A stretch of DNA of 64,000 nt from Dimorphilus gyrociliatus (GCA_904063045.1 CAJFCJ010000025.1:1023955-1087954); one strand, 5' to 3'; shown: positions 1 through 30,022, counted from the stretch's first letter. Notes: generated by a model from the sequence alone, not told the origin. Translations and numbers: made by a program.

Positions 1-3000
1 TGTTGGTGTAGAAGGAGATGTTGCTAAAATGACAACACCTGCTTTCAGCATAACAATGCCAAAAGTATGCTTCTCTTACTATTATCACATGTATGGCAGC
101 ATGGTCGGAAAACTTCAAGTGTTTCTGCAGTACAATGGCTTGTTTATTACTATTATAGGCATATCTATTTACTAAGACACATTTTCTTCTATATTATAGA
201 TAGTATAAACAATATAATATACCAGCACGCGTTAAATCATGGAAACAGATGGATTCTTAATGAAATACTGATTAAAAAATCTCAAAATACATCTCTTAGA
301 ATAGTCTTTCAAAGTATTCGCGGTTTTGATAGAAGTAATCTTTTAGGTTTAGATGATATAAGGCTCTACAATGGTTTCTGCGAAACACTTAGAGGTTATC
401 ATTAATCTCAACAAAAAATTATACAACACTAAATCAATATACCATGGCTTTTTTTCACAGATAAATGTATTAATTCAAGTTTTCAATGCAAAAACGGAAA
501 ATGTATTGACAAGAGTCTGGTTTGCAACGGAGAAAGCGAATGTTTCGACGGAAGTGACGAAAGCAATTGTTCCGATTGCCTACACGACATTCAAGGCAGA
601 TTCTACACAGGAAAACTTTCAACAACCGAATCTGGAAAGAGATGCATGAGTTGGAAAGAGGCTGTTGGCGAAACGCAAACCACCATCTCAGTAGAGACGG
701 GAGAGACGAGTTTGACAGAAATGACAAACTATTGCAGAAACGTTAACGGAAAGAAATCTCCGTGGTGTTACGTATCAAAAGAAAGATGGGAATTCTGCAG
801 CATTTCCAATTGCGGTACAAAGATTAATATTCCAATTCAAAAAATATCTCTTTCGCTTGAAACGAAAGAAACAATAAACTGTAAATATTTGCAGAATGCC
901 GAGAAAATCAATACAGATGCAACAATTCGGCTTGTATTTCTTCAAAACAAAGATGCAATGGAATATCGGAATGTCCTCATAAAGACGACGAAGAATCGTG
1001 CAGTAAGAATTCACAAGAACGTTCTTTCTAAGTTTAAAATCATAATTCCACTTAGATTCAACGATATCATGCGACTTTGACGATCCTTTTATGTGTGGAT
1101 ATTCAATAATACCATCCGATAATGGTTATAGATGGTTTAGATTTAATTTTAAAACGCCATCGGTAAACACGGGACCACACGCCGATCACACAACAATCCA
1201 TAAAACAGAAAGAGGTTAACAACTAATCATATTTAAAGCTGTATCACTACATAAGAATTCTCTTTTCAAGGTTTTTACATGTACGTCGAATCAACGCAGG
1301 AAGGAACATTTTTGAAAGGAGGGGATGAAACATATCTACTAAGTCCTCTCTCTCATATTTACGGAAATTTTTGTCTCAAATTCTTTCATCATTTAAAAGG
1401 CAGAGATATAAATATATTGAGAGTATACAGAAAGATTGGAGACATATATTCTCCATTAGGAAAACTAGAAGGTCAATCACAGAAATATATTTGGAAATCA
1501 TCGGAATATACAGTCAATAAAATCACTCATCAGATAGTATTTCATTATATTAGAGGAGTTGATTTCAGAAATGACCCTGGTATTGATGATGTTCTCCTAT
1601 ATCCTGGAAATTGTAAAAGTAACCAACATTAACATTCATAACATTCTCTTTATTTCATACTGATTTTAATGCCAAAACATTCCGTTCAGCTCATCGAACT
1701 TGTTCACATTTTGAATTTACTTGTTCCAATGGCCACTGCATCAACAACACTTACACTTGCGATGGATACGACAACTGTGGCGACTTTTCAGATGAACTAG
1801 TCTGCGGTATAACACCTCCTTCATTCCTATTATTCATTTAATCTATTCCATTTCTTTCCTCTCCTCTTCCTATAGAAACGGAATGCAAGAGATCTTTGCA
1901 AGAACAATGGTATATAGGGACGAGAAATGTTTCGCAAACTGGCAAAAAGTGTCTCTACTGGAGGAACATGTCAAACTCTTTCAAGATTCCCTATCGTTTC
2001 CCGGATGAAAGTCTGCAAAGTGCGGAGAATTATTGCAGAAATCCAACGAATAGAACGTTTGGTCCTTGGTGTTACGTTGATAAAGAGAGTGAAATGTGGG
2101 AATACTGCAATATCCCTAAATGTTCAGGTTTGTAGAATCAATAAGTTGAATAATAAAGAAAGTAAAAGAAAGTTGCAATCAGTTTTCCAAAGTTGTCAGT
2201 CGAACGAATTTCAATGCGCGAATGGAATGTGCATTGATAAAAAACACTTGTGCGACGGAGTAAACGACTGCAACGATAGATCGGATGAAATGGAGATTTG
2301 TGGATCGGCGTACAACATCTCGTGTGATTTCAGTGATCGTTATATGTGTGGCTACACAGACGATAGTCCTAATTGGAACTACAGATTTCAAAGGAAAGGT
2401 TCTTTTGATGGTTCAGTGCAATCAGTAATTCGGCTTTTAACTACAAAATGGGATGAGTGTTTTCATGAGGATACGGCTGGAATTGATTATGAAGGAAATG
2501 TTCAGATTCGAAGTGATGGAATCACTTGTCAGAAATGGAATGTGCAATTTCCTACTGCGCACGCTTTTTATATGAATGAGTTTTTCCCTGAAAAAAGTGT
2601 AGCCAAAGCTGAAAATTATTGCAGGTAATAAATTGTTTTCTCATGCAATGAAAGTGTAAAAATGTCTTTTCTTCTCAGAAATCCAGCTGTCTATGTTCCT
2701 GGAAAGAAGTATTCTCTTGCTCCACATTGCTTGTCGTCCGATCCAGAGATTTCCTATTATAGATATTGCTCTATTCCATTATGCAAAAGTAGTTTAAATG
2801 TTTTCACAGAATTTCTGATCTGTTTACAAAATTCATGCAATTAGATACATTTATAAAGACAAAACCATCGACTGAACAAGGCCAAATAGCCAAATTCAAC
2901 AGTCCTAAAAGTCAAGGCTTTGGAGACTCATGTATCCAATTCGCTTACATGTTGATTGGAGATGACGCCGGATCTCTAAAATTAATGTGCAGCTAATTTT

Positions 3001-6000
3001 TGTATCCTTATCTTCCCTATTTTTTTCAGAGTTAAATCTGTTTTTTGAATTGTTAAACAGGTTGAATACTAACAGCACCACTCGTTTGTTGTGGTTTACG
3101 GAGGGTAAGAAGGCGTCAACTTGGATTGAGGCGTCTGTTGATTTCACATCGAATGACGAATTCTATTTGACTTTCCAAAGCGAATCTGGATTGAAAAGTC
3201 CAGGCGTCGCGTTGAAATACGTGAACATCAGACGAGGTTTCTGCCATATTCAAAGTAATCATCATTGAATGATTTTGCCAAAGAGCACAATTAATTCTAT
3301 AATGAAAATATTGTTTGCAGACGATTGCGTAGGAAAATTTTCATGCAAAGCTGATTCGAAATGTATAGAATCATCAAAAGTTTGCGACCATCTTGTTGAT
3401 TGTATTGACGAATCTGATGAAGTTTCGTGTAGTAAGTTTCCGTCCACTTTATCTTCAAGCTTGAGAATTTGACTTTTTATTTGCGAATTTTCTATTCAGA
3501 ATGTTTGGATGACGAATACAAATGTAGGAATGGAAAATGTGTCAGTCGTAATAAATTACTCGATGGCATAAATGATTGTTATGATAACTCGGATGAAGAT
3601 CATTCAAACCTCGATAGTCTAATTAGGGAAAAGAAAAATTGGAAGAATATAAAAATGTTTGAAAAGAACAGCAATTTTCTAATTAATCGAACCATGTTTG
3701 CGGAAAAGGATTGGGAACCAAAGATAAATGGAGCTCACTTTGTCAGATTTCTCACTGAAATGAGTCATCAAAGATCTGACTTAATATCAGAGTTTGTTAT
3801 AATTTTTTCTATTGTTTGTCCTTTTCATTAGAGTTGCGTTTTGTTTTTGCAGTTGCGATTGGAGAGGAAGCCCGTGCAAGTACCAAAATGTTAAAATATT
3901 AGATAGATTTACGGATCATGGTCAATGCTTTTCGTTCAGTCGGAAAGGAGATAATGATACTCTTCTCGTTACAGAATCAGGTTGACTTTGGTCCCTTCAA
4001 AATTTTCTTTCAAGATCTTTTTTGGTCGATTGTTTTAGAATTAAATTTTAACTGAGTTGTGTTTCAGGTGCTCAAGCCGGACTGAGATTAACTTTGAATA
4101 TCGAATCGTACGAATACATGATTGGTCCTCACACCAATAAAGGAATTAAAGTATTGTCGTCCAAATCTTCTGTTATTCTTCCGATGTATCTACGTTTCCT
4201 GTTTCTTTTCAGGTTTACTTGCACGATGCAAATGAAACACCGAGAATAAATCATTTAGGATTCTCGTTAGCTCCTGGCTTTCACCATTCTATTGCCATAA
4301 AGAATACGAAGGTTTCACATAGTTTTATCTGTCTAATGCCACGTATGATAACGTTGCTTGTTTGTTTCGCTACAGGTTTATAATCTGGAAAAGCCATGGG
4401 GAAATTGTGGTCGAAGTGAATTAACACATTTTGCAGACTACACTGCGAATAAATGTAATCTGGACTGTACGATTAAGGATATCTATAACAAATGTGGATG
4501 TCTGGCTCCGTATATGAATACTAAATTAAGTGAGTTGTTTTTGCTGTATTTTATTAATTAATTTAGCTATTTGTGAATGATATTTCTGATAAAAAGATAG
4601 GACTTATTGTGGATTCTATGATTATTTTAATTGCATTATTAAGGAAGGTAATAAATTTTTACAATTTTTTATCTTTACTAATTTTAATATGTTAACGTGT
4701 TTTGCTTAGAGGAAAATAGTCAAATTTCATTAAATAATTCCTGTAAATGTCAACAAGCTTGCTTCCAGAACGTTTACGAAGTTTGTTATTATTTCATAAT
4801 TCGTCCTAGTTTGAGAATAAGCATTTTTATTGTTGAACTCTTTTAGCCGGTTATATCATCATCGGCTCTTTCGGATCTCAGTGTCGAGAGAATCTTACAA
4901 TTTGAAAATGAATCTTTACAGATAGAGTATGAGAATGCCGTGGATGTTAAAGCTAGATCAAGAATTACGGATTATTCAAATGAAATTACCATATTTTTTA
5001 CGTTATACAACACTTTAGATAGCGTTCAAGAATTTTTTTTCAATAATATTGCTATAAGTGGAATTGGCGGAATATCTAACAAGATTGAAAGTGCAACAAT
5101 TTTCTATATGAACAAAACAAACGAAGATTTAGGAATAATGAAAAATTATCTTCGTACATCTATCCAGAATTTTGAAGACAAACTTTTGAAAAAACACCAA
5201 AAGTTTGAAGCCAGCTTCAAGAATGTGGAAGATAAAATTGCGTTTTTCCGACACACCGAATATTCTCAACTATTCAATAAAACCATTTTAGAAAATGTAA
5301 TGGAAAATTTAATACAGAATTTGAGTTCTTTGATTTCCAATGAAAGCTTTAACGCTATTAAGTTAAATGTTCGCATCTTATCAAATTGTTTGAGAGAAAC
5401 TGAAAATATACAAATGCATTTAGTGAATTTAGCAACAAAGTTATCGGATATGCAGCTATACAGTTCTACATTTCAAAATTTATCAATTTCAGTAAGAAAG
5501 TATTTAGGATGCTTTCAAAATATTCAAAAAACCATCATAGCTGCTAAAAGATCCATCGAAATGTTTGACGAAGAATTCGAGACATTTTCTAGTGAGAGAC
5601 AAGATATGTTCAGCTTTCTACAGAATTCCAACTACGATCTTGTTATTAATAAAGAGAAAGCGATGTTTGCAGAAATTATTCGTTTATATCTTTCCGGTCA
5701 AAGCATCATTAAACTCTCTCGAAAATATCCAACAGATTTATTTGAAAAATCAAAGTTAAACGTGAATTTCTTAATTTCTCTCTTCAGAACAAAATTCACT
5801 GAAGTATATAAAATGTCAATAATACGTTTAAACAATGAAATTGTTAAACGATACTCTAAAACTATAGAAATCGCTAAGACCCTGAAAGATATTTTAGGAG
5901 AAGATAAGATTAGAGAAATAATAAATTCCTTTTCAATTTGGAAGAGATATTCATTATCTCTATTAAATAAAAAGGTCACTTTTACCAGGACCAGAGATAA

Positions 6001-6588
6001 CACTCCTATTCAAACCGAAGATTTTAAAGTTATTGGTGAGGTGATAAAAGATAATGTAGGCCTATATTTAACGCCTATTACGAATAGTCTGAACCATTTT
6101 CAAGAGTTGGTAGACGGCTATATAGTGAGGTTGAAAATGTCGTTGGACGACGTTCTGGACATGTTTCACAGATATAAAAAAAAGGCCGAGTTGGGTTCGG
6201 ATTTCGTTAAGGAAAATTTCCTCATCGTCGACGTTTTCTTTGGCGAATTAAGCTATTCGAAAATCACGCAGAGAAGGGCATTTAACATCGAAGAACTCTT
6301 AGGTAATCTCTCTTTATATTATCACTTATACTGATAACTCTCTCTTCATTTCACTTCCATGTTTCAGGCAACGTTGGAGGTTTTATGGGTCTTTTATTAG
6401 GAGCCAGCGTTTTAACCGTCTTTGAGCTATTGGATTTGTTAATATATAACATTTTGCTAAAACTTTCCAATGGTAGTCATACAGTAAAGAGTGATGGTGT
6501 TGTTTTGGAAAATGAACTAGTTAAAAATAATCTAGTTCAAATGAAGGAATTGGAAAATTTCACAACAAGCTCTATAAAGTATGCATAA
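1..6588 (+). CDS. DEG/ENaC (ASIC/FaNaC-superfamily) channel subunit with MAM/kringle/LDLa ectodomain array, paralog A (multi-exon; 5' part outside window)
   Basis: Spliced exons give MAM, LDLa and kringle (NYCRN..PWCY..WEYC) modules. These are followed by DEG/ENaC hallmarks: [31 protein letters not shown], a Cys-rich thumb ([20 protein letters not shown]), [23 protein letters not shown], and TM2 [26 protein letters not shown] with the GAS filter. Stop at 6586-6588. Confidence 0.92.
500..4440 (+). repeat. Near-identical tract A=B (copy at about 13713-17653, offset 13213)
   Basis: Direct comparison: exons and introns match apart from scattered SNPs; the sequence diverges on either side. Confidence 0.95.
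5845..6452 (+). repeat. Near-identical tract A=B (copy at about 19040-19647, offset 13195)
   Basis: Identical C-terminal third of the large exon, the intron and the TM2 exon. A shorter similar patch lies at about 5683-5758 / 18878-18953. Confidence 0.95.
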
Positions 6589-8956: not shown

Positions 8957-11900
8957 ATGACTGAAGAGAATTTTACGTGGAAGCAGCTTTTCTTTGAATT
9001 TTCTCAAGATACAACATTTCATGGAGTAAAATATATAGCAAAGCCTACTAAATTTCAACTTCGAAGGTAAAGTTTATCTATTGATTAAACTATTAAGACA
9101 AAAATAAGTTAAACATTATCGGTCGTTCTTTCTACGCCTACTCCTTTCTCTCTCTCTCTCTCTGCATCTTTGTCTCTCTGTAGACAAAGACAACTACAAG
9201 TCTGTTTTTAAACATAACTTATCTCTTTTATTGTTAGAATTATGTTTTTTATAATTAGCAATTATATCGTACAAAATTCTAGTACAAAAGTCCTCTGAAA
9301 CAATTAACGGACAATCATAGAAAATGCCCCTATTCAATTCTAACATTTTTTACGTTTCTATTCAGAATACAACAATAATAGTCAACATCTCATTTGAATG
9401 AAAATTAACGAAAAATAATAAGCAAATTATCATAATTTAATTATTCTATATAGCTACGAAATATCATGTCGTTTAACACTAATACTTTCTTCTTCATAAA
9501 TTAATTCATCATCAATTTCCACTCTTCAATTTCTTCAACAAAACATAAATTTCCACTTCCAATAAACCAAAGTACAAAGAAAAAGAGAGAGACAAGGAAA
9601 GAGATAATTTACCCTTCCACTTCAATCATCTCCTACATAAATTATAAATTTCCTTATTATTTAATTGTGACTCATAAATTTAGTATAATGTTGACACGAT
9701 ATGTATTTTAAACATCATTTGTACATTATTTTCCCGTTTTATGTTCCAGGTTGATTTGGATCCTAATTATCCTTTGTGCATCAACATTCTTCACTTACAT
9801 AGTTGTCATTCGATTTATGGATTACTTCAGTTATCCTAAAGCAGTTGATGTCGAAGTTTTGTATACTAAACAACTCGAATATCCAGTTATTACACTCTGC
9901 AATCAAAACGTCTACAGAGCATCAGCAACTGTAGAAACGGGCGTCTTCGACGCTTTTGAATCATATTTTACTAAAACTACACAAAACAAAGGTACGCCTC
10001 TAGTTGTACCTATTCATATTAATAATTATTAATTATTAATCCTATCTGCCTAATTATCTTTATGATTTTTATGTAAATTTCTCTCTGTAACTTACCAATT
10101 CCAATATTTCTTCACTTAGATACAGAGTGTCAAGATGGTTTTCAAGTGCTTCTCAATAGCGTCCTAATTCACCCTAGTAGCGTCTTCATTTCGGAAATTC
10201 ACGTAAATGTAACGCCTGGTGTTTGCAAATATACTTGTCTCAATTTGGCTTCGATTTCCTGCAATTCACTTTTATACTATCGATCAAATTTGACGTGTCT
10301 CTTACTTCAATCAAGTCATAAAACCCCAAATACTCTTTTACAAAATTTCCAAGGCGTCGATTACTACTCAAGGTCAAGACGCGACAGTCAGTTTACAATT
10401 ACACCTTCTTCTTTACCTTTCCACTATTATTCCTTTAATTCTCCTTCATTAATCTATTCAATGTGACACGTTTCAGGCAAAGAGAGCTTTTGCTCTTTCG
10501 ATTTAGACTTTTGCAACTTTCATCAAGTCAAATTTGACGATATCGACTGGCAGAGAAGAAAACTTGGCAATATTCAAACTCTTTCCGGACCGGACAACGA
10601 TCATACAACCGGATCCGGATATTTTCTCTTTTTGGAGGGGGGCAAAGAGCAAATGGGACGTTTAATTTCGTCTTGGCATTCGGCGAAAACTTGGAAGACG
10701 AGCTGCGTTACTTTCTATTATTTCATGTATGGATCATCGGTTAATAAATTACAGTTTTACGTTGTTGACCCTGACAACTATAGCTATAAACTTTGGGAAA
10801 AATCCGGATGTCAAGGAAACAGATGGTCAGTTGAACGAAACGGAAACGTCAATGCAAAAGTATTGTCTAAACCATTGTGTTCTTTAACAGGCGAAAAGCG
10901 AGTGTCAGTGTAAACCTTGAATTGTTCCAAATTCGGTTCGATGGCTACACCGGAAGAGCAGATCGCCACGTTATTGCTGTCGATGACGTGTCTATCAAGC
11001 AATGCCATAGAGGTAACGATGGAATATCGATTCAAAACTGCTCTATTCTATTCATAATTATGATTTTCAGAGTCGCAAGATTGCAGAAATGATAAAACGG
11101 GAGATTTATACAGAGGAAATCAATCATTTAGTATAAATAATAGACGTTGTTTATACTGGAATGATGTTCATTCTGTCGAGTTGTTGTTCTTTGAGGACGA
11201 AACAATTCGGCAGACTAAAAACTTTTGTAGGAATCCTGGAGGTAGAAAATCCGAACCTTGGTGTTTCGTACAACGAAACCCTCTTCTTTGGGAATATTGT
11301 AATATTCCTTTATGCGGTTCGTAAGAAAATGATCATTTTTCCAGTTCGGTAATCGTCTCTTGTATTCTTTTTCGTAGAAAGCATCGATTCAACAAATAAG
11401 ACGATTTCAAAAGTCGGCGCTAAAAAGGGCGCTGACTACGGTAGGTTTTATTCATTGTTCATGATTTATCGAAGAGAAATTCAGATATTTCAAAGATAAA
11501 AAGTGTTTTTATAATAATTTTATAGAAGTATCGATCAGCTGCGCATTTGAAAATTCATTTATTTGCGGTTACACGATTGCTTCCGATTCTGAATCTTTCA
11601 TCTTTAAATTGGAAAATGGACGATATCTACAACTGCATTTTGGCCCTGGAATGGATAGTACTTACTATAGTCCTCTCAAAGGTTCCTCTTTTCCTTTTCT
11701 CTTTGTCAATCGATCATCAATTCCGTCTCTCCCTCTCTTTCTTGTCGTTTAGGGAATTATCTCTACGTTGACAGTCAACTGGCCGTTGAAAATTCCAAAT
11801 CGTGGATTACTTCTCCTCAAATTTTCCTTCGTCAATTATCGTGTTTGTCGTTCGTTTGTTCTAAGAAAGGACTAAACTCCCTCGACGTGTATCTTCTTAA

Positions 11901-14900
11901 AGAGGGAAATCTTCGAATTCCCCTCTACGAAGTTGACGAGTCGACTGTTGGTTGGAGTGAAAAGACTGTTGCAATTCGTTATTGGCCAAAAATTTCATTC
12001 GGGTTGACGAGCATAGTCTTTGAAGCTGTTCACAAATTTGGATACGACAACTCTTTGGCAATTGATGATGTGAAATTCAACGAAGGTTACTGTTCAATTG
12101 CAGGTAAGTCTGTTTTATTAAACTGCAATAATTTACTCTACTGATTGTCACGACGGTTGTTTCCAGAATGCGAAAGTGGGAAATATCAATGCCAAAATGG
12201 AAAATGCATTAGCAATGAGCAAATATGCGATGGAATAAACGATTGTTTCGATAATAGCGACGAAGAGATTCCGTGTTGTAAATAGATTTCTTTACTCTAT
12301 TAATGATAGGTTTCTTGAAAAGACTCTAATGAGGAAACTCTCTTTCTCGACAGCATCGTTTGATTGTAACTTTGATGGTAAAACCTTATGTGGTTATTTA
12401 TTAGAAAGCTCTGTTAGCTACTTTAAATGGAAAAAGATTCTGATAGACAATTCTACTAACTGTACGTATTTGTGTTCATATTGGTGTATTGACAGAATCT
12501 CGTACATTTTTCAAATGACTCATAAAATATTTCATTAGTTTAAGTAGTCTATAAATAATTAAAATAATTACTAATTGAATAGTCCAACAGCTCATTATAT
12601 TACTTTGTCTTGATATATTGATTCTCTTAATCAAGATTTTTTTTATAGTGTTCTTCTTGGGAACCTACAGCTACGGTCCAAGATTTATTTCTGCAGCCAA
12701 GATTCGATCTCCTATTGTTGAGACAAATGAACGAACGTGTGCCAAATTCTATAGTTTGTTTAATTCTTCTCTTCCCGCTGTGCTTAAAATTTCAGCACAT
12801 CTTGAAAGCAGAGAATCACAACTGTTAGCGACGATTTCGAATCTACCTAATCAGCAAATAATGGAGAATATAATTCCTCTACCACCGAATAAAAAATTGT
12901 CGGTATGGTTCGAATCTTTTATGGATACTTTTGGACATGAGGTTTACATTGGGAAAATATCACTTGATCGAAATTGCTCTACCTACGAAACTGAAATTAA
13001 TGTTAATTGTACGTTTGAATCGGAAATCATTTGCGGCTATATTATTGAATATGAAAAACACGGATACTCTTGGACAAGGATTAAAAAGAGCACTTCAGTC
13101 AATAATGGTCCAAAAATGGATCATACCCTCCAAAACACTAGTTAGAAAAACATAATGTATTTCCATAATATATAAAAAATATTTCGTTTCATCCAATAGA
13201 TGGATTCAGTATGGTGACTCGAGGTTTGGTGGGAACAGAGGGCGATATTGCCAGAATGTCTTCTCCACTATTTGTTCCAAAGTCTAAATTCGCATGTCTT
13301 TCATATTACTATCATATGTTTGGGAGTATGTTAGGAAAATTAATAATATATTTCCAATACACAAGTCTGTAGGATATTATAAAAGAATCTTCATCTTGAT
13401 AACTAACCTTCTTTTATACAGATAAACTTATACGTCGGGCATTTCAACATGAGTTTAACCAAGGCGATGTATGGCTCCACAACGAAATTCTTATTCGTAA
13501 TCAACAAAATGTAGAAATGAAAGTGATCTTTGAAAGTATTCGCGGTTTTGATAGAAGTAATAAAATGGCATTGGATGATATTTCTTTCTATAATGGATTT
13601 TGTCAAACTCTTCAAGGTTTCCTCCAATCCTTTTTTCATTCTTACACAACAAAATCACTTTATATTCATGCAGCTCAATGCCTCAATTCGAGCTTTCAAT
13701 GCCAAAATGGCCAATGTATTGACAAGAGTCTGGTTTGCAACGGAGAAAGCGAATGTTTCGACGGAAGTGACGAAAGCAATTGTTCCGATTGCCTACATGA
13801 CATTCAAGGCAGATTCTACACAGGAAAACTTTCAACAACCGAATCTGGAAAGAGATGCATGAGTTGGAAAGAGGCTGTTGGCGAAACGCAAACCACCATC
13901 TCAGTAGAGACGGGAGAGACGAGTTTGACAGAAATGAAAAACTATTGCAGAAACGTTAACGGAAAGAAATCTCCTTGGTGTTACGTATCAAAAGAAAGAT
14001 GGGAATTCTGCAGCATTTCCAATTGCGGTACAAAGATTGATATTCCAATTCAAAAAATATCTCTTTCGCTTGAAACGAAAGAAACAATAAACTGTAAATA
14101 TTTGCAGAATGCCGAGAAAATCAATACAGATGCAACAATTCGGCTTGTATTTCTTCAAAACAAAGATGCAATGGAATATCGGAGTGTCCTCATAAAGACG
14201 ACGAAGAATCGTGCAGTAAGAATTCACAAGAACGTTCTTTCTAAGTTTAAAATCATAATTCCACTTAGATTCAACGATATCATGCGACTTTGACGATCCT
14301 TTTATGTGTGGATATTCAATAATACCATCCGATAATGGTTATAGATGGTTTAGATTTAATTTTAAAACGCCATCGGTAAACACGGGACCACACGCCGATC
14401 ACACAACAATCAATAAAACAGAAAGAGGTTAACAACTAATCATATTTAAAGCTGTATCACTACATAAGAATTCTCTTTTCAAGGTTTTTACATGTACGTC
14501 GAATCAACGCAGGAAGGAACATTTTTGAAAGGAGGGGATGAAACATATCTACTAAGTCCTCTCTCTCATATTTACGGAAATTTTTGTCTCAAATTCTTTC
14601 ATCATTTAAAAGGCAGAGATATAAATATATTGAGAGTATACAGAAAGATTGGAGACATATATTCTCCATTAGGAAAACTAGAAGGTCAATCACAGAAATA
14701 TATTTGGAAATCATCGGAATATACAGTCAATAAAATCACTCATCAGATAGTATTTCATTATATTAGAGGAGTTGATTTCAGAAATGACCCTGGTATTGAT
14801 GATGTTCTCCTATATCCTGGAAATTGTAAAAGTAACCAACATTAACATTCACAACATTCTCTTTATTTCATACTGATTTTAATGCCAAAACATTCCGTTC

Positions 14901-17900
14901 AGCTCATCGAACTTGTTCACATTTTGAATTTACTTGTTCCAATGGCCACTGCATCAACAACACTTACACTTGCGATGGATACGACAACTGTGGCGACTTT
15001 TCAGATGAACTAGTCTGCGGTATAACACCTCCTTCATTCCTATTATTCATTTAATCTATTCCATTTCTTTCCTCTCCTCTTCCTATAGAAACGGAATGCA
15101 AGAGATCTTTGCAAGAACAATGGTATATAGGGACGAGAAATGTTTCGCAAACTGGCAAAAAGTGTCTCTACTGGAGGAACATGTCAAACTCTTTCAAGAT
15201 TCCCTATCGTTTCCCGGATGAAAGTCTGCAAAGTGCGGAGAATTATTGCAGAAATCCAACGAATAGAACGTTTGGTCCTTGGTGTTACGTTGATAAAGAG
15301 AGTGAAATGTGGGAATACTGCAATATCCCTAAATGTTCAGGTTTGTAGAATCAATAAGTTGAATAATAAAGAAAGTAAAGGAAAGTTGCAATCAGTTTTC
15401 CAAAGTTGTCAGTCGAACGAATTTCAATGCGCGAATGGAATGTGCATTGATAAAAAACACTTGTGCGACGGAGTAAACGACTGCAACGATAGATCGGACG
15501 AAATGGAGATTTGTGGATCGGCGTACAACATCTCGTGTGATTTCAGTGATCGTTATATGTGTGGCTACACAGACGATAGTCCTAATTGGAACTACAGATT
15601 TCAAAGGAAAGGTTCTTTTGATGGTTCAGTGCAATCAGTAATTCGGCTTTTAACTACAAAATGGGACGAGTGTTTTCATGAGGATACGGCTGGAATTGAT
15701 TATGAAGGAAATGTTCAGATTCGAAGTGATGGAATCACTTGTCAGAAATGGAATGTGCAATTTCCTACTGCGCACGCTTTTTATATGAATGAGTTTTTCC
15801 CTGAAAAAAGTGTAGCCAAAGCTGAAAATTATTGCAGGTAATAAATTGTTTTCTCATGCAATGAAAGTGTAAAAATGTCTTTTCTTCTCAGAAATCCAGC
15901 TGTCTATGTTCCTGGAAAGAAGTATTCTCTTGCTCCACATTGCTTGTCGTCCGATCCAGAGATTTCCTATTATAGATATTGCTCTATTCCATTATGCAAA
16001 AGTAGTTTAAATGTTTTCACAGAATTTCTGATCTGTTTACAAAATTCATGCAATTAGATACATTTATAAAGACAAAACCATCGACTGAACAAGGCCAAAT
16101 AGCCAAATTCAACAGTCCTAAAAGTCAAGGCTTTGGAGACTCATGTATCCAATTCGCTTACATGTTGATTGGAGATGACGCCGGATCTCTAAAATTAATG
16201 TGCAGCTAATTTTTGTATCCTTATCTTCCCTATTTTTTTCAGAGTTAAATCTGTTTTTTGAATTGTTAAACAGGTTGAATACTAACAGCACCACTCGTTT
16301 GTTGTGGTTTACGGAGGGTAAGAAGGCGTCAACTTGGATTGAGGCGTCTGTTGATTTCACATCGAATGACGAATTCTATTTGACTTTCCAAAGCGAATCT
16401 GGATTGAAAAGTCCAGGCGTCGCGTTGAAATACGTGAATATCCGACGAGGTTTCTGCCATATTCAAAGTAATCATCATTGAATGATTTTGCCAAAGAGCA
16501 CAATTTATTCTATAATGAAAATATTGTTTGCAGACGATTGCGTAGGAAAATTTTCATGCAAATCTGATTCGAAATGTATAGAATTATCAAAAGTTTGCGA
16601 CCATCTTGTTGATTGTATTGACGAATCTGATGAAGTTTCGTGTAGTAAGTTTCCGTCCACTTTATCTTCAAGCTTGAGAATTTGACTTTTTATTTGCGAA
16701 TTTTCTATTCAGAATGTTTGGATGACGAATACAAATGTAGGAATGGAAAATGTGTCAGTCGTAATAAATTACTCGATGGCATAAATGATTGTTATGATAA
16801 CTCGGATGAAGATCATTCAAACCTCGATAGTCTAATTAGGGAAAAGAAAAATTGGAAGAATATAAAAGTGTTTGAAAAGAACAGCAATTTTCTAATTAAT
16901 CAAACCATGTTTGCGGAAAAGGATTGGGAGCCAAAGATAAATGGAGCTCACTTTGTCAGATTTCTCACTGAAATGAGTCATCAAAGATCTGACTTAATAT
17001 CAGAGTTTGTTATAATTTTTTCTATTGTTTGTCCTTTTCATTAGAGTTGCGTTTTGTTTTTGCAGTTGCGATTGGAGAGGAAGCCCGTGCAAGTACCAAA
17101 ATGTTAAAATATTAGATAGATTTACGGATCATGGTCAATGCTTTTCGTTCAGTCGGAAAGGAGATAATGATACTCTTCTCGTTACAGAATCAGGTTGACT
17201 TTGGTCCCTTCAAAATTTTCTTTCAAGATCTTTTTTGGTCGATTGTTTTAGAATTAAATTTTAACTGAGTTGTGTTTCAGGTGCTCAAGCCGGACTGAGA
17301 TTGACTTTGAATATCGAATCGTACGAATACATGATTGGTCCTCACACCAATAAAGGAATTAAAGTATTGTCGTCCAAATCTTCTGTTATTCTTCTGATGT
17401 ATCTACGTTTCCTGTTTCTTTTCAGGTTTACTTGCACGATGCAAATGAAACACCGAGAATAAATCATTTAGGATTCTCGTTAGCTCCTGGCTTTCACCAT
17501 TCTATTGCCATAAAGAATACGAAGGTTTCACATAGTTTTATCTGTCTAATGCCACGTATGATAACGTTGCTTGTTTGTTTCGCTACAGGTTTTCAATCTG
17601 GAAAAGCCGTGGGGAAATTGTGGAAGAAGTGAATTAACACATTTTGCAGACTACTCTCCGAATAAATGTAACATCGATTGTTCTATTAAAGATACATTAA
17701 ATAAGTGCAACTGTTTAGCTCCGTATATGAAAAGTGTAGCGAGTGAGTTTTTAGAGAATTTTGTTTGATTTAACACTTGAAGATTGTTTTTTTATTATCA
17801 AAAAGCCGATAATTTTTGTGGATTTGACGAATATTTTAACTGCATCCTTGTCGAACGTAAGCTATTGTGCTTTTTCTTTTCTTAGATATATTTTTATAAT

Positions 17901-19801
17901 CACTTTTAATAGCGGATGATCTTAGCGCTCCATTGAATGAATCCTGTAAATGCCAGCAAGCGTGTTATCAAAACATCTTTGAGGTTGGTTTTATACTTAA
18001 TTTGTGCCTTTCATATACTTTGACTAACTAATGATTGATATTAGCCAGTTATTTCGTCATCGGCGCTTTCGGAGCTAAGTGCCGAAAAGATATTACGGTT
18101 TGAAAATGAGTCTTTACGAAGAGAGTATGAACATGCTCTCGACGTAAGGGCTCGGTCTAGAATTAAGGACTATTCGGAGGAAGTTATAATCTTCTTCAAT
18201 TTGTCGAGTACTTTTGAGAATCTACAGGACTTTCTTATAAAAAATATTCCTTTATTTGAACCGAATGGAATTTCCTCTAAAATCAGCACAGGAACAGAAT
18301 TTATAATGAATATTGCTAATAAAGACATTGAAGTTTTTAACAAATGCCTGAATTCAACGCTAGAAGAATTTCAATCTAAAGTTTTAAAGAAAGTAGACAA
18401 AATTAAAAATGTTTTTCAACTGTTAAAAAATCAAATTCACTTATTTTCCTATTTGGAAACGATTCACGACGTTCATTTAAACATCGTAAAGAACTTGTTA
18501 AAAGAGTTCATAAGTCAATTAGATGATCTTCGACCGAGTGACAATTCTACTGCTTTTCAAACAACGATTCGAATATTACCACTCTGTTTAGCTAACACAG
18601 AGAGTATTCAGTTATATCTTTTAAATTTAACCGATAATCTCTTAAATAATACAATAAGAGCTAGTCTCTCTGAGGATCTTTTCGACGAAGTGAAAGACTA
18701 TCTAGACTGCTTTGAAAATATTTCAAGAATTATCGTCGACTCTAGAGACGCTCTTAATTTTGACCAAGCGTTTAATGAATATTTTGACGAAAGAAAGAAT
18801 ATGTTTAACGCAATTGGTATATCCAGTTTTGATGAAATAATTGAACAGGAGAAAGCACTGTTTTTGGAAATTATCCATTTATATCTTTCCGGTCAGAGCA
18901 TCATTAAGCTCTCTCGAAAATATCCAACAGATTTATTTGAAAAATCAAAGTTAACGGTTGATTCGTTTTCCGGAGCCGTAAGATATAAATTCACAGAAAT
19001 ATATAAAGTTAACATTGGACATTTAAAAAGTGAATTGTTAAAACGATACTCTAAAACTATAGAAATCGCTAAGACCCTGAAAGATATTTTAGGAGAAGAT
19101 AAGATTAGAGAAATAATAAATTCCTTTTCAATTTGGAAGAGATATTCATTATCTCTATTAAATAAAAAGGTCACTTTTACCAGGACCAGAGATAACACTC
19201 CTATTCAAACCGAAGATTTTAAAGTTATTGGTGAGGTGATAAAAGATAATGTAGGCCTATATTTAACGCCTATTACGAATAGTCTGAACCATTTTCAAGA
19301 GTTGGTAGACGGCTATATAGTGAGGTTGAAAATGTCGTTGGACGACGTTCTGGACATGTTTCACAGATATAAAAAAAAGGCCGAGTTGGGTTCGGATTTC
19401 GTTAAGGAAAATTTCCTCATCGTCGACGTTTTCTTTGGCGAATTAAGCTATTCGAAAATCACGCAGAGAAGGGCATTTAACATCGAAGAACTCTTAGGTA
19501 ATCTCTCTTTATATTATCACTTATACTGATAACTCTCTCTTCATTTCACTTCCATGTTTCAGGCAACGTTGGAGGTTTTATGGGTCTTTTATTAGGAGCC
19601 AGCGTTTTAACCGTCTTTGAGCTATTGGATTTGTTAATATATAACATTTTCGTAAAACTTTCAATATCTAAACAAGAGGAGAAGAGCGCGGAAAATTTTC
19701 CTAATCCATCAATGGAAAAGAGACATTCTCAGAATTATGTCACAAATTTCAATAAAGAATATACTAAAGATGGCGGATTCACATCTTTAAATAGATTTTA
19801 A
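8957..19801 (+). CDS. DEG/ENaC channel subunit with PAN/MAM/kringle/LDLa ectodomain array, paralog B (complete, multi-exon)
   Basis: Exon 1 (8957-9066) encodes [26 protein letters not shown], with the HG gating motif, and splices in frame to 9750 (TM1, then [13 protein letters not shown]). By manual reading this is followed by 1 PAN, 6 MAM, 4 kringle and 7 LDLa modules, then the channel core, a large exon (18045-19497) and TM2 with GAS. Rough size estimate is about 2,500 aa. Confidence 0.92.
9844..11325 (+). repeat. Near-identical tract B=C (copy at about 21072-22555)
   Basis: Offset 11228-11230; covers PAN, MAM1 and kringle 1, including introns. Confidence 0.95.
10121..10370 (+). other. PAN/Apple-like domain exon of paralog B (copy at about 21349-21600 in paralog C)
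   Basis: Cys pattern CKYTC..CNS..YY....TCLL followed by VDYYSR matches the PAN/Apple consensus from memory. Confidence 0.7.
13467..14209 (+). repeat. Near-identical tract B=C (copy at about 24967-25709); also shared with A from 13713
   Basis: Offset 11500; introns are identical. Confidence 0.95.
14755..15713 (+). repeat. Three-way near-identical tract (A about 1542-2500, C about 26263-27221)
   Basis: Offset to C is 11508; the match ends abruptly inside kringle 4 (GNVQIRSDG vs GNVQKTVNG). Confidence 0.95.
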
Positions 19802-20567: not shown

Positions 20568-23500
20568 ATGATTGAAAAGAAATTGAATTGGACAAGTTTA
20601 TTCTACGGATTTTCACAAGATACAACTTTTCACGGCGTTAAATATATTACTAAATCTAGTAAATTTCTATTAAGAAGGTAAGCATTTTCTTTAACATATA
20701 TATTCTCTTTCAGAGATCGTTACCTTTTCTACATAGATCTGTTCAATAAAAATGATCAACCAATAATCTCCAATAATATATAGTATACATATTGTTCTTT
20801 CCACAGCCTGAATGCATCGGTCAACATCGCGTAGATGCGCAATTCTATATCAATATCAATTATAGATAAAACAAAACATTGCTACTATAACCATAAACTA
20901 ATTAATTTATTGTTTACAACTTTCCCTATAAAACTAGACCCTAAAATAATTTCTTTTATCTCTTCTACTTTTTACAGAGTCGTTTGGGCAATTCTTGTTC
21001 TAGTCTTGTCAACATTCTTCTCTTACATCATTATCATCAGATTTATGGATTATTTCAATTATCCTAAAGCTGTTGATGTCGAAGTTTTGTATACTAAACA
21101 ACTCGAATATCCAGTTATTACACTCTGCAATCAAAACGTCTACAGAGCATCAGCAACTGTAGAAACGGGCGTCTTCGACGCTTTTGAATCATATTTTACT
21201 AAAACTACACAAAACAAAGGTACGCCTCTAGTTGTACCTATTCATATTAATAATTATTAATTATTAATCCTATCTGCCTAATTATCTTTATGATTTTTAT
21301 GTAAATTTCTCTCTGTAACTTACCAATTCCAATATTTCTTCACTTAGATACAGAGTGTCAAGATGGTTTTCAAGTGCTTCTCAATAGCGTCCTAATTCAC
21401 CCTAGTAGCGTCTTCATTTCGGAAATTCACGTAAATGTAACGCCTGGTGTTTGCAAATATACTTGTCTCAATTTGGCTTCGATTTCCTGCAATTCACTTT
21501 TATACTATCGATCAAATTTGACGTGTCTCTTACTTCAATCAAGTCATAAAACCCCAAATACTCTTTTACAAAATTTCCAAGGCGTCGATTACTACTCAAG
21601 GTCAAGACGCGACAGTCAGTTTACAATTACACCTTCTTCTTTACCTTTCCACTATTATTCCTTTAATTCTCCTTCATTAATCTATTCAATGTGACACGTT
21701 TCAGGCAAAGAGAGCTTTTGCTCTTTCGATTTAGACTTTTGCAACTTTCATCAAGTCAAATTTGACGATATCGACTGGCAGAGAAGAAAACTTGGCAATA
21801 TTCAAACTCTTTCCGGACCGGACAACGATCATACAACCGGATCCGGATATTTTCTCTTTTTGGAGGGGGGCAAAGAGCAAATGGGACGTTTAATTTCGTC
21901 TTGGCATTCGGCGAAAACTTGGAAGACGAGCTGCGTTACTTTCTATTACTTCATGTATGGATCATCGGTTAATAAATTACAGTTTTACGTTGTTGACCCT
22001 GACAACTATAGTTATAAACTTTGGGAAAAATCCGGATGTCAAGGCAAAAGATGGTCAGTTGAACGAAACGGAAACGTCAATGCAAAAGTATTGCCTAAAC
22101 CATTGTGTTTTCTTTAACAGGCGAAAAGCGAGTGTCAGTGTAAACCTTGAATTGTTCCAAATTCGGTTCGATGGCTACACCGGAAGAGCAGATCGCCACG
22201 TTATTGCTGTCGATGACGTGTCTATCAAGCAATGCGATAGAGGTAACGATGGAATATCGATTCAAAACTGCTCTATTCTATTCATAATTATGATTTTCAG
22301 AGTCGCAAGATTGCAGAAATGATAAAACGGGAGATTTATACAGAGGAAATCAATCATTTAGTATAAATAATAGACGTTGTTTATACTGGAATGATGTTCA
22401 TTCTGTCGAGTTGTTGTTCTTTGAGGACGAAACAATTCGGCAGACTAAAAACTTTTGTAGGAATCCTGGAGGTAGAAAATCCGAACCTTGGTGTTTCGTA
22501 CAACGAAACCCTCTTCTTTGGGAATATTGTAATATTCCTTTATGCGGTTCGTAAGCAAATGAATAGTTTCATTAAAACAGAATGTGTCTTTTAAATTATT
22601 ATCTTATTTTGTTAGACTCAAAGGAAAAGGTAAAGATTGAAATTGAAGGTAAAAGAAGATGAATATATCGATTCATATTGGATGATATTTGTTTTGCTGT
22701 TTAAATTTAGAATCGTCGGTTGACTGTAATTTTGAAAAGAGTTCTATTTGTGGTTATGATAAAAGTTCTAACACAAATGATTTCATGTGGACTCTAAGGA
22801 ATGGAAGTTCAACCCATGATCACCTTGGCCCAACAATGGATAAGACATTTTACAGTCCATTAAAGGGTAAGCATAACCATTTTTTAATGACAACATTACG
22901 AGATTAAAGACTATAGACAATTGAATAGGAAATTTCATGATGGTTGATAGTAGATATGCCGTTGAGAATTCAATAAGTTGGTTAGAGTCACCACCCGTAC
23001 TGTTGAAAGTTTCGTGCTGTTTGAAATTTTACTTTTGCAAGAGAGGACAGATAAACTTACGATTGTTTTTAATCAAAGATAATAATATACGTACTCCTCT
23101 AGATGAAATTATTGAAACAGCAAACTCCTGGAAATTGAAAACAGTAAATATTAACAAGTGGAAAAGAAGCTTGTTGATGTTTGTTAGAGTTTTATTCGAA
23201 GCGGAACATAAATTTGGATTTGATAGTACAATTGCAATAGATGAAATAGAGCTGCAAAGAAGAAATTGTCGTTTGGAAGGTAGATTAACAGAGAGAGAAC
23301 TGTAGATTTCAAGTCAGTTTATCTAAAATGAGGCAGCCGATAAGGACAAAGGAATTATTTAGAATTTTTTAGTCTTTTTACTACTATTCACTTTTTGTTA
23401 TGTTTTAATTGACACATTTATTAATAGCTTTGAAAAGACTAGCCTTGTTTAGGTGAGCTGAACTGAAATCTCTTTAAACCCTATACTTTTATTACTGTAC

Positions 23501-26500
23501 ACCCTATAAATTTTATACAACTTCTTTGTAGAAGTCTCATTTACATACTTGATTCTTTCAAATACAAAATACTTGCAGAATGTAAAACAGACGAATTTAA
23601 ATGCAGTAATGGTAGATGTATCGACGGTAAAAAAGTTTGTAACGGCAATAACGACTGCTTCGACTATAGTGATGAAGAATTGCCTTGTTGTGAGTAGTTC
23701 TACTGGCAAAGTATTTGACCCAGATTTATTAATCATTAATTATTAAAGAATTAATATCTAACTACGTATGTTAAGTAACAAGCCGTTGTTCGTGTCTTTT
23801 TTTAGTCCTCCTCTTTGACGTCATGATCCTATATAGATTTTCTTTAATTATTCCCAATATCTTAAAGATTATTATTAATTTAGGCTTTTTCATCTCTTTT
23901 CTCAATTAAAATTAATGACTACTCCCCTTAACATATGCTCTTTCACTCTCCATAGCAACATTTCAATGCAACTTTACTGGAAAAACTTCTTGCAGTTACG
24001 TAATGGAGCATATTCTTCATTATTACAAATGGGAAAAGACTAATGAATCAAATTGTTCGATTTTTACATGAACAAGTTTTCCATACACTTGATTACATAG
24101 AGAATTTTTCTTTAATTGCAGTCGGCTTTATGAAAGTATTCTCCTATGGTCCTAAAGTTACTTCTTATGCAATTCTGAGGTCGCCTTCCATTAATACAAG
24201 CTCCGAAAGTTGTGCCGTTTTTTCGACATTACTGAATTCTTCAGTTTCGGCTGCTTTAAACATCTATGCTGATTTGGAAAAAGGGCCAACAAAAATTTTA
24301 GCTACTATTTCAAAATCACCTAATAAATATATAACAAAAAATATCGTTCCTTTACCGCCAAATGTTCAAATGAGTTTATCATTCGAGTCTCGTATGGATA
24401 CTTTTGGACACGAAGCTTATGTTGGAAATATCTCACTTGATCGAAATTGTTCTACTTATGAAACCGAAATTAATGTTAATTGCACGTTTGAATCGGAAAT
24501 TCTCTGCGGTTTTATAATTGAATACGAAAAACACGGATATTCTTGGTATAGAACCAACAGCAGTTCATCCATATTCAATGGTCCACTAACCGACCATACG
24601 TTTCAAAATTCTAGTGAGAACACAATATCAACATCTTTCAGTTTTTCATAAGATTCGGAATTCTACTATTAAACCTTTCATTCCAACAGGTAGTGGAAAT
24701 TTTATAATCACGAGAGGGTTGGTGGGCGTTAAAGGCAATAGAGCAAGAATAAGCTCGCCTAACTTTAAACCACAATCATCCATTTCCTGCTTATCTTATT
24801 ACTATCATATGTTCGGTAGCTTAATCGGAAGACTCCAAGTCATCCTTCGACTTGAAGGTTTCTTTACTAATCCCTAAAAGGTTATTTAAATTTTCTAATC
24901 GCTATTCCATTTTTCTTACAGAAAAACTTACTATTCACGTATTCAAACATGAATTTAACCATGGCAATGTATGGCTCCACAACGAAATTCTTATTCGTAA
25001 TCAACAAAATGTAGAAATGAAAGTGATCTTTGAAAGTATTCGCGGTTTTGATAGAAGTAATAAAATGGCATTGGATGATATTTCTTTCTATAATGGATTT
25101 TGTCAAACTCTTCAAGGTTTCCTCCAATCCTTTTTTCATTCTTACACAACAAAATCACTTTATATTCATGCAGCTCAATGCCTCAATTCGAGCTTTCAAT
25201 GCCAAAATGGCCAATGTATTGACAAGAGTCTGGTTTGCAACGGAGAAAGCGAATGTTTCGACGGAAGTGACGAAAGCAATTGTTCCGATTGCCTACACGA
25301 CATTCAAGGCAGATTCTACACAGGAAAACTTTCAACAACCGAATCTGGAAAGAGATGCATGAGTTGGAAAGAGGCTGTTGGCGAAACGCAAACCACCATC
25401 TCAGTAGAGACGGGAGAGACGAGTTTGACAGAAATGACAAACTATTGCAGAAACGTTAACGGAAAGAAATCTCCTTGGTGTTACGTATCAAAAGAAAGAT
25501 GGGAATTCTGCAGCATTTCCAATTGCGGTACAAAGATTAATATTCCAATTCAAAAAATATCTCTTTCGCTTGAAACGAAAGAAACAATAAACTGTAAATA
25601 TTTGCAGAATGCCGAGAAAATCAATACAGATGCAACAATTCGGCATGTATTTCTTCAAAACAAAGATGCAATGGAATATCGGAATGTCCTCTTAAAGACG
25701 ACGAAGAATTTTGTAGTATGTATTTAGTTATCGTAAAAAATTTTAACTTAAAATACTATAGTATAGCAATGTTATTGCAGATTCTTCAATAACATGTAAC
25801 TTTGAAGAGGATAACATATGTGGATATACTATTTTAATATCTAATAACAATTATCAGTGGATTCGTACAAATACTCCGACACCCTCCCAAGGTACTGGAC
25901 CTGATCATGATCATACTTATGGCAATAGAACAGGTATTACAAATTACTTGAAGTCTGTATTGTTAACACCAGTTCCATTCGGGTTGCATAGGTTTTTACC
26001 TTTATGTGGAATCTACTCAAGAAGGGCCACCTTTGAAATTCGGTGATGAAACCTTTCTCTTTTCTCCTATCGTCAAGCCAGTAAAAAATCATTGTTTACA
26101 ATTCTTTTATCATATCTTCGGCTTGGATATTAACAAACTAAATGTTTATATGAAAGTAAACAACCTTTACAAGTCGCTAGCAAAATTCAATAAATCAACT
26201 CAGTTGCCGAATTGGTTTATGGCTGAATATTTCATTCGACCTAACATTGAACAAATAGTTTTCCATTATATTAGAGGAGTTGATTTCAGAAATGACCCTG
26301 GTATTGATGATGTTCTCCTATATCCTGGAAATTGTAAAAGTAACCAACATTAACATTCACAACATTCTCTTTATTTCATACTGATTTTAATGCCAAAACA
26401 TTCCGTTCAGCTCATCGAACTTGTTCACATTTTGAATTTACTTGTTCCAATGGCCACTGCATCAACAACACTTACACTTGCGATGGATACGACAACTGTG

Positions 26501-29500: not shown

Positions 29501-29983
29501 CCTCAACAACACAAAAAGGATTATTCCTATAGCGACTGTATAAAAATTGATTTATTAGGCATTTTCTTCCAGAAGGCTGTCAAATAATAAACTATAATCC
29601 TCATAAGCCTAATCTTCTTTTTCTTCTTTTTCTTTTCCTCCTATTCTACCTTTTTTTCTTTACATCTATAAAATATCCCAATAATGCAGAGGGTCAATTC
29701 TCTTTATCCTCGTTTTGTTGCAGATGATAATTATTGCGGTTATGAAAAATACTTTAACTGCATCGTACAGCACTGTAAGTAGGAATGTTACAGTATATCT
29801 ATTAGTATATGCAATTGTAGTTAGTATTAAAACGGCTTAAAATGAAAGGATTTTTTTGTTTGCAACAGCGGATGAGAGCGTTAATCTCTCCTTCAACGAA
29901 TCTTGTAAATGCCAACAAGCCTGCTATCAGAATATCTTTGAAGTTTGTTTGTTAAATTTTTTTGCTAAGATTATTACAGTGGG

Positions 29984-30022
<39 letters not shown>

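Follow-up and report, generated by a model that had tools for sequence, protein, structure and literature searches.

In the DEG/ENaC superfamily (Pfam ASC, PF00858), the coupling of a stimulus to the channel gate is best understood for small ligands, such as protons and FMRFamide, and for proteolysis. The interface between the finger and the thumb of the ectodomain controls gating in ASIC, FaNaC and ENaC. The opening of these channels by a tether to the extracellular matrix is still argued; the known tether proteins are separate molecules that are hard to reconstitute, and the MEC-4/MEC-10 touch channel of Caenorhabditis elegans is thought to be linked to the matrix via MEC-1, MEC-5 and MEC-9 (the tether model). 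Two systems show that a channel subunit of this superfamily can carry additional extracellular parts. The GRIP domain of ENaC, a small β-sheet domain from which proteases remove stretches of 20–40 amino acids (aa), is "located between α1 and α2" at the periphery of the ectodomain and controls gating in ENaC (Noreng et al., 2018, PMC6197857). The EGAS proteins of C. elegans ("EGF plus ASC") are the only known DEG/ENaC proteins with extra modules, and they produced no currents in oocytes (PMC10424705). In this study, we describe a gene of Dimorphilus gyrociliatus, at positions 8957–19801 (+ strand) of a stretch of 64,000 nucleotides (nt) that we call the window (GCA_904063045.1, CAJFCJ010000025.1:1023955-1087954), in which a long array of PAN, MAM, kringle and LDLa modules is placed in the finger of an ASIC-like channel. 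An earlier note on this DNA, made from the sequence without database searches, had pointed out this combination and had cited EGAS as a precedent, which is a real one. In full-text literature searches for ENaC or degenerin together with MAM, kringle, LDLa or their Pfam accessions, this architecture was not described, and unnamed entries with such a layout may exist in the protein databases; the ENaC repertoire is described merely as "canonical" in the paper on the Dimorphilus genome (PMC7854359). The DEG/ENaC variant with a PAN-MAM-kringle-LDLa array in its finger is real and new.

The coding region of this gene, hereafter copy 1, consists of 34 exons and encodes 2,622 aa in a single stop-free frame. 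We curated the model by following the reading frame, the splice signals and the continuity of the domains, and compared it with RNA afterwards. Automatic splice predictions were dropped; they gave either 49 exons, an over-spliced structure from which the first transmembrane segment (TM1) had been removed, or 26 exons, an under-spliced one. Translation starts at the ATG at 8957, which is the first in-frame ATG past a stop, and the TAA codon ends at 19801. All 33 introns are bounded by GT and AG, and they measure 53–187 nt except for intron 1 (683 nt). Their median of 64 nt agrees with the published figure of 66 bp for this species (PMC7854359), and the window as a whole is eukaryotic DNA that is rich in AT and has very short introns. 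On the + strand of 8945–19801, the stop-free open reading frames (ORFs) present, in order, an HG segment, TM1, cysteine-rich modules, a thumb, a 494-aa cysteine-poor ORF and a second transmembrane segment (TM2) with LLLGAS. In the predicted protein, the HG motif, TM1, the post-TM1 motif and the finger helix α1 are followed by the modules PAN-MAM-K-MAM-L-MAM-MAM-L-K-L-MAM-L-K-L-MAM(nested K)-L-L, where K is a kringle and L an LDLa, and then by the ASIC-like core and TM2 with its GAS motif. The earlier note had read the same modules in the same order by eye, and Pfam scans run exon by exon bear this out; the giant size that it had expected is also confirmed, with 2,622 aa in place of its figure of about 2,500. 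Only two segments of the protein are hydrophobic (19-aa windows above 1.8), namely aa 38–59 and aa 2549–2574. Therefore, aa ~60 to 2548 are extracellular, the ectodomain comprises ~2,490 aa, and the N-terminus is short and cytosolic.

The array and the channel core are one gene, transcribed and spliced as a unit as far as the data reach. A public RNA run of 2017 (X1) provided spliced contigs, with joints listed for 8940–14939. All 15 listed joints are of the GT..AG type and lie exactly on the predicted junctions from exon 4/5 to exon 18/19, and they include two, 12461/12649 and 13364/13422, that had been picked earlier by domain logic. Upstream of these joints, an 808-nt contig covers the PAN exon at contig positions 499–767, and the depth bins for exons 1–3 were observed to be 26.5, 40.8, 15.3 and 42.5, compared with the values of 27.0, 40.4, 15.3 and 42.5 that are expected of a single contig with both introns skipped. 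Together, this contig and the depth arithmetic indicate that the 5′ untranslated region, exon 1, exon 2 (TM1) and exon 3 (PAN) are joined. The 31-mer content of 9700–17100 in X1 is 0.63, where 0.643 would be expected if all exons and no introns were represented, and that of exon 33 is 0.96. At the far end of the array, LDLa7 and the finger segment that follows it share one uninterrupted exon, which bridges the array and the core. The open frame, the RNA joints and this shared exon thus support the claim of the earlier note that the array belongs to one gene, with TM1 before it and the channel core after it.

The array comprises 1,684 aa and 18 modules (one PAN, six MAM, four kringle and seven LDLa), every one of which passes Pfam. 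The E-value is 6e-8 for PAN_1, reaches down to 3e-20 for MAM, and ranges from 2e-16 to 6e-18 for the kringles (3e-8 for the nested one) and from 4e-8 to 2e-12 for LDLa; in the same scans, no exon contains a trypsin domain. The best relatives of MAM1 in the PDB are an SR-C-like scavenger receptor, the enteropeptidase heavy chain and MDGA1, with neuropilin and meprin also among its relatives, while the kringles are related to those of plasminogen and HGF and the LDLa modules to those of LRP2 and LDLR. Kringle 4 is nested in MAM6 as a domain within a domain, and the same exon layout occurs at 5220–6304 of L007, a contig from another species that is described below. The acidic calcium-cage motif of LDLa, D/N-x3-D/E-C-x-D-x-S/D-D-E, was found by pattern search in five of the seven modules and was recognized by eye in LDLa4 and LDLa7; the calcium-cage motifs are kept in L007 and in copy 2, the downstream tandem paralogue of copy 1. 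In the LDLa pattern, Cys4 and Cys6 pair with each other. Both of these cysteines have been lost from LDLa7, the module adjacent to the finger, in L007 and in all three paralogues of the window (copies 0, 1 and 2), and the acidic calcium-binding motif has been retained (positions compared: 16713–16815 and 28224–28330 of the window and 6528–6630 of L007). Nearly all exons of the array are of phase 1-1, which is the classical signature of exon shuffling, and the array most likely originated by exon shuffling into a phase-1 intron.

According to the earlier note, the array replaces the finger domain. This is not the case. The helix α1 can be aligned to ASIC1 up to residue 114, the PAN exon begins ~10 residues later, and the first PAN cysteine comes only a few residues further on in copy 1, copy 2 and L007. 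On the other side, LDLa7 is followed by 63 aa that extend up to the residue matching C173 of ASIC1. Because α1 stands before the array and this segment after it, the finger has been interrupted by an insertion in the α1–α2 region and has not been replaced. The 63-aa segment has no sequence match in the PDB; it forms a helix-loop-helix in an AlphaFold2 (AF2) model of low confidence (predicted local distance difference test, pLDDT, 53), and its last 20 residues are conserved among the paralogues (F-x-x-F-L-x-E-x-S-H-Q).

The array is located between α1 and the β-ball, and its position is therefore that of GRIP in ENaC. Both are lineage-specific extra domains between α1 and α2 at the periphery of the ectodomain; however, the array consists of 18 autonomous disulfide-rich modules and has no conserved protease site. 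A single furin-like R-x-K/R-R site is present, RSRR at aa 202–205 between PAN and MAM1, and it is lost in L007, where this position reads FRSRCP. We therefore reject the furin site as a conserved feature, and neither the motif scan of copy 1 nor the comparison with L007 revealed paired conserved protease sites flanking an inhibitory tract. EGAS proteins resemble copy 1 in that extra extracellular modules of adhesion type are built into DEG/ENaC subunits, but their modules are EGF only and far fewer, and the resemblance does not imply that the extra parts are homologous. MALRD1, MAMDC4 (endotubin) and the enteropeptidase heavy chain are characterized by MAM modules that alternate with calcium-binding LDLa modules, and the array shares this alternation; it does not have their stand-alone secreted or single-pass form, being an internal loop between TM1 and TM2. 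PAN and kringles are combined in plasminogen and HGF as they are in copy 1, but in copy 1 they are interleaved with MAM and LDLa, the C-terminal protease domain of plasminogen and HGF is absent, and the kringles are without the acidic lysine-binding pair.

The channel parts on both sides of the array show the hallmarks of the superfamily. The ASC profile matches exon 2 with its positions 24–93 and the last exon with its positions 433–454, and within the core it recognizes the palm and thumb (8e-5 and 8e-8) and TM2 (2e-4). The HG motif (TTFHGV, aa 19–24) and the selectivity filter (LLLGASVLT, aa 2552–2560) are both present in copy 2, and the filter is also present in L007. The conserved cysteines of the DEG/ENaC ectodomain are in place, namely the one after TM1, the C-x-W/F-x-G-x-x-C pair, that of the β-ball and the ten of the thumb, which are encoded by exons 30–32, and the core motifs occur together with HG, the ten thumb cysteines and LLLGAS; the small residues ahead of TM2 are intact. 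The earlier note was therefore right in stating that HG, the thumb cysteines and the GAS of TM2 had all been preserved. In piecewise PDB searches, exon 2 matched ASIC5 (5e-10) better than it matched full-length chicken ASIC1 (residues 46–114), exon 27 was aligned to ASIC1 173–210, and the thumb was matched to ASIC2 (8e-5). Copy 1 contains the complete ASIC-like core of a DEG/ENaC subunit. It has in common with ASIC and BASIC (ASIC5) the two transmembrane segments, HG, the post-TM1 motif, the cysteine pairs of the β-ball and palm, the ten thumb cysteines, the β11–β12 linker and GAS, and it differs from them in that the protein is approximately five times longer, with a finger array of 1,684 aa and a helical insert of ~400 aa in the knuckle. 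No histidine is present in aa 60–80, the part that follows TM1 and that in rat ASIC1a contains H72 and H73.

The insert in the knuckle is the second one in this protein; neither this insert nor the tandem family described below appears in the earlier note's account of the array. Exon 33 begins as an ASIC-like knuckle start and ends in β11–β12, its final 42 residues being aligned to ASIC2 390–431, and between these ends lie ~400 aa whose counterparts in the window are found at 4847–6301 and 30125–31488. No Pfam family was found in the scan of exon 33. AF2, run on an alignment of seven homologues in which two cysteines are invariant, predicts a bundle that is entirely helical, in which single helices reach 60 residues (pLDDT 75.6; predicted TM-score, pTM, 0.67). 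Fold searches of the PDB and the ESM Atlas yielded nothing meaningful (all TM-scores below 0.3). Among the AlphaFold DB clusters there were only weak matches, including the oyster protein K1PHY3, annotated as "amiloride-sensitive cation channel 4-B" (TM-score 0.45), and the unnamed protein R7T5W4 of 654 aa (TM-score 0.38); these may serve as leads and should not be regarded as findings. In ENaC, the knuckle and the finger jointly form a collar atop the ectodomain (PMC6197857), and both inserts of copy 1 thus emerge from the collar.

The window contains three tandem paralogues of this family within positions 1–31888, namely copy 0, which is truncated at the edge of the window, copy 1 and copy 2. 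Their identity is a mosaic in which blocks of 95–100% adjoin blocks of 25–60%; one near-identical block, 9781–11332 of copy 1 against 21009–22562 of copy 2, reaches 98.8%. This is the pattern that would be expected of repeated gene conversion among old duplicates. In the diverged blocks, the proportions of nonsynonymous (pN) and synonymous (pS) differences are 0.32 and 0.74 for the array, 0.18 and 0.81 for the core, and 0.36 and 0.83 for the helical insert, with synonymous change saturated. Since pN is far below pS in each of them, the array, the core and the helical insert are all under purifying selection. The best conserved parts are the pore and the gate, with identities of 77–80% in TM2 and 69–78% in the palm. 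Compared with copy 1, copy 2 has two extra introns, at 28467–28615 in the exon of LDLa7 and the finger segment and at 31489–31561 in the knuckle exon; both contain GA / GAGT microsatellites, and they are possibly recent intron gains.

Two minor observations concern RNA of this family. One X1 contig departs from copy 1 at 12407 (exon 11) and then encodes a related but different start of MAM3 (TVSYYKWEK); it was probably transcribed from a different gene of the family. A run of 2020 that is labelled "DNA?" (X2) contributed only a spliced piece at 13562–13836, in which the intron 13617–13673 is skipped and has no coverage, so that X2 behaves as an RNA library; the piece carries a T>C difference at 13798 and perhaps derives from a near-identical paralogue.

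Homologues were also sought in other samples, with protein searches that covered candidates of 0.55–1.75 times the query length. An exhaustive search with exon 33 returned four related fragments and no long proteins, and a profile search with the helical insert returned the same four; these fragments lie on contigs from runs of a different, related organism. The exon of LDLa7 and the finger segment had no matches as a query, and the TM1 exon matched two fragments. The contig L007 (16.8 kb) carries a colinear homologue from model aa 88 to the stop, with 55% identity; its exon phases and module order are unchanged, down to the kringle within MAM and the fusion of LDLa7 to the finger, and 104 of the 111 cysteines are kept. 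A second contig, L009, is syntenic with 28.6–39.8 kb of the window at 73–95% nucleotide identity, including the leucine-rich repeat gene downstream of copy 2. As a separate observation, a third sample (ERR14224706) contains a TM1-type ASC exon that is 84% identical to exon 2, with a MAM ORF ~3.2 kb downstream on the same strand; this layout hints at the fusion in an organism with longer introns.

We believe that copy 1 may encode a self-tethered mechanosensor or a macromolecule-modulated Na+ channel, and we assign this reading a probability of roughly 0.45. Under this proposal, the subunit would assemble as a trimeric Na+ channel, and macromolecules of the matrix, mucus or cell surface would attach to its calcium-caged LDLa modules and to its adhesive MAM, PAN and kringle modules. 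Binding or pull would then pass via the very short α1–PAN link to the finger–thumb interface and bias gating; with so short a link between the array and the gating finger, occupancy of the array, or a pull on it, would shift this interface. The family would have grown by tandem duplication with gene conversion. The MEC-4/MEC-10 channel offers a functional analogy for the tether, except that the matrix modules of C. elegans are separate gene products, whereas those of copy 1 lie within the pore-forming chain. A bolder picture, which we consider speculative and rather unlikely, is that the pore subunit bears its own tether, such that in each trimer the finger and knuckle would be connected directly to the matrix or to another cell by three 1,700-aa arrays and three ~400-aa helical stalks. 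Copy 1 would in that case be the first DEG/ENaC, and one of the rare ion channels of any kind, with an antenna for force or macromolecules and a pore in a single chain, and one cDNA would be enough to test the long-debated tether model of mechanosensation by DEG/ENaC channels. Several observations weigh against the proposed receptor-channel. The EGAS proteins, the sole precedent for additional modules, did not yield any current in oocytes (PMC10424705). Conservation is lowest in the finger segment that follows the array (25–34% identity), which suits loose coupling as much as tight coupling. By our own reading against the textbook pattern, the two acidic residues of the classical lysine-binding site are missing from the kringles, and there is no clue to what these modules might bind. 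Skipping of any array exon would leave the reading frame intact, and shorter isoforms are therefore possible. Lastly, the RNA junctions that the earlier note had named as a check were seen for exon 4/5 to exon 18/19 and for the passage from TM1 to PAN, but the X1 contigs are fragmentary, and no single RNA molecule from TM1 to TM2 was seen.

The last of these points also bears on whether the gene is an artefact, that is, a mis-joining of separate genes, a pseudogene or a chimera of the assembly. The near-identical tandem blocks could indeed confuse both assembly and read mapping. However, RNA contigs cross the passage from TM1 to PAN and all junctions tested, LDLa7 and the finger share an exon, the 2,622 codons contain no stop or frameshift, and the same structure is found in copy 2 and in an independent contig of another species; we consider an artefact to be very improbable. 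If the gene is accepted as real, the core might do no more than present a recognition array at the membrane as a trimeric scaffold, in immunity or adhesion for instance, with conduction irrelevant or lost. Such a scaffold would suit the tandem, mosaic paralogues, whose array blocks have diverged, and the fact that local duplicates in this genome are often immune genes (PMC7854359). This explanation appears quite improbable, given that the pore and the gate are the best conserved parts, that pN is lowest relative to pS in the core, that the HG motif, the GAS filter and the small residues ahead of TM2 are intact, and that the array is under purifying rather than diversifying selection.

The two remaining explanations take the protein to be a working channel. 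The array might act, as in ENaC, as an inhibitory cap that is cut off or cut within to open the channel, which is the idea of gating by proteolysis raised in the earlier note. The part of this idea that stands is the insertion at a site equivalent to that of GRIP; in addition, a furin-like RSRR does lie between PAN and MAM1, and PAN and kringles recall protease zymogens. The idea is weakened by the fact that this single site is not kept in L007, while the RSRR of copy 2 lies in a gene-converted block and provides no independent support. Moreover, every one of the 18 modules is conserved, and pN stays well under pS where the array has diverged; a cap that is thrown away would not be expected to show this, and we regard a cleavable cap as improbable. 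The alternative to be taken most seriously is that gating is ordinary (by protons, by a peptide, or constitutively open) and that the array anchors, clusters or sorts the channel at an apical or matrix site or captures cargo in the manner of MAM-LDLa endocytic receptors. Arrays of MAM and LDLa modules, like the calcium cages of LDLa, are a usual feature of scavenger and endocytic receptors; the best matches in the PDB are the SR-C-like scavenger receptor, the enteropeptidase heavy chain and LRP2; the core retains every ASIC-type hallmark; and conservation is poor in the finger segment beside the array. Nevertheless, it is exactly the gating finger that has received the insertion, rather than one of the termini or a neutral loop; the link of a few residues from α1 to the first PAN cysteine is kept in L007; and a second large insert is placed in the neighbouring knuckle. 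These facts make anchoring with ordinary gating possible but doubtful to us, and we prefer the reading in which the array acts on the gate.

In either case, the finger has received a large set of binding modules at the GRIP site, and purifying selection has preserved every one of them across several paralogues and a second species. Should the array gate the channel, a single cDNA of copy 1 would provide a self-contained receptor-channel for work on tether or macromolecular gating. If the array does not gate the channel, the gene would still be a clear natural case of exon shuffling into the gating domain of a channel, and it would indicate that the finger and the knuckle tolerate inserts several times the size of the channel itself. 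The coordinates of copy 1 and its tandem paralogues are collected in Table 1.

Table 1. Positions in the window of the coding region of copy 1, its parts and its tandem paralogues, with the evidence for each.
Feature	Position	Strand	Evidence
Coding region of copy 1, 34 exons, 2,622 aa	8957..19801	+	Curated GT-AG model; 15 listed RNA joints as predicted
Exon 1: cytosolic N-terminus, HG motif TTFHGV	8957..9066	+	Sequence; RNA depth consistent with splice of exon 1 to exon 2
Exon 2: TM1, β1–β2, post-TM1 motif, finger helix α1	9750..9991	+	Pfam ASC 1.7e-11; PDB phmmer ASIC5 5e-10, ASIC1 46–114
PAN/apple domain, starting ~3 aa past the exon 2 boundary, RSRR at its end	10120..10386	+	Pfam PAN_1 6.4e-8; 808-nt RNA contig enters from upstream exons
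MAM1, two exons	10477..11012	+	Pfam MAM 2.7e-20; RNA joint 10825/10891
Kringle 1	11071..11316	+	Pfam Kringle 2.4e-17
Linker exon, 21 aa	11378..11440	+	RNA joints on both sides
MAM2, two exons	11526..12103	+	Pfam MAM 1.1e-8; RNA joints
LDLa1	12167..12277	+	Pfam Ldl_recept_a 2.4e-10
MAM3 (shortened) and MAM4, four exons	12354..13616	+	Pfam MAM on exons 12, 13 and 14; RNA joints 12461/12649, 13140/13200, 13364/13422
LDLa2 and kringle 2, single exon	13674..14027	+	Pfam 2.2e-12, 5.7e-18; PDB plasminogen, HGF, LRP2
LDLa3	14108..14215	+	Pfam 2e-8
MAM5, two exons	14269..14831	+	Pfam MAM 5e-5, 1.6e-10; RNA joints
LDLa4	14903..15019	+	Pfam 5e-12
Kringle 3	15089..15340	+	Pfam 2.2e-16
LDLa5, then MAM6 with nested kringle 4, four exons	15396..16467	+	Pfam LDLa 7e-12, Kringle 2.9e-8, MAM 2.7e-3 and 2e-4; same exon content in L007
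LDLa6	16534..16644	+	Pfam 1.3e-8
LDLa7 (without Cys4 and Cys6) and remaining finger segment, one exon	16713..17004	+	Uninterrupted ORF; Pfam LDLa 4.4e-8; same in L007
β-ball, palm and thumb, six exons, with core motif and ten thumb cysteines	17066..17983	+	Pfam ASC pieces; PDB ASIC1 173–210, ASIC2/1 thumb
Knuckle start, ~400-aa helical insert and β11–β12, one large exon (exon 33)	18045..19497	+	No Pfam family; last 42 aa to ASIC2 390–431; AF2 pLDDT 75.6; 96% of words in X1
TM2 with GAS selectivity motif, 48-aa cytosolic tail	19563..19801	+	Pfam ASC 433–454; hydropathy
Copy 0, upstream tandem paralogue, cut by window edge	1..6570	+	Colinear tblastn from aa ~883 to end; 472–4518 98.7% identical to 13685–17731
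Copy 2, downstream tandem paralogue, 36 exons, 2,609 aa, open frame, same module order	20568..31888	+	Gene model; per-module identity to copy 1 25% to 100%

Other genes are located downstream of the three paralogues. Directly after copy 2, on the opposite strand, a single-exon gene at 32080–34269 (−) encodes a leucine-rich repeat protein of 729 aa (LRR_8, 8e-45), and its syntenic counterpart lies at 3621–5723 of L009. DNA repeats that are 74–95% identical occupy 44.7–56.4 kb, and tandem copies of a glycosyltransferase of family 64 (exostosin-like) are found on the − strand at 46392–47538, 52750–53247 and 56006–57205.

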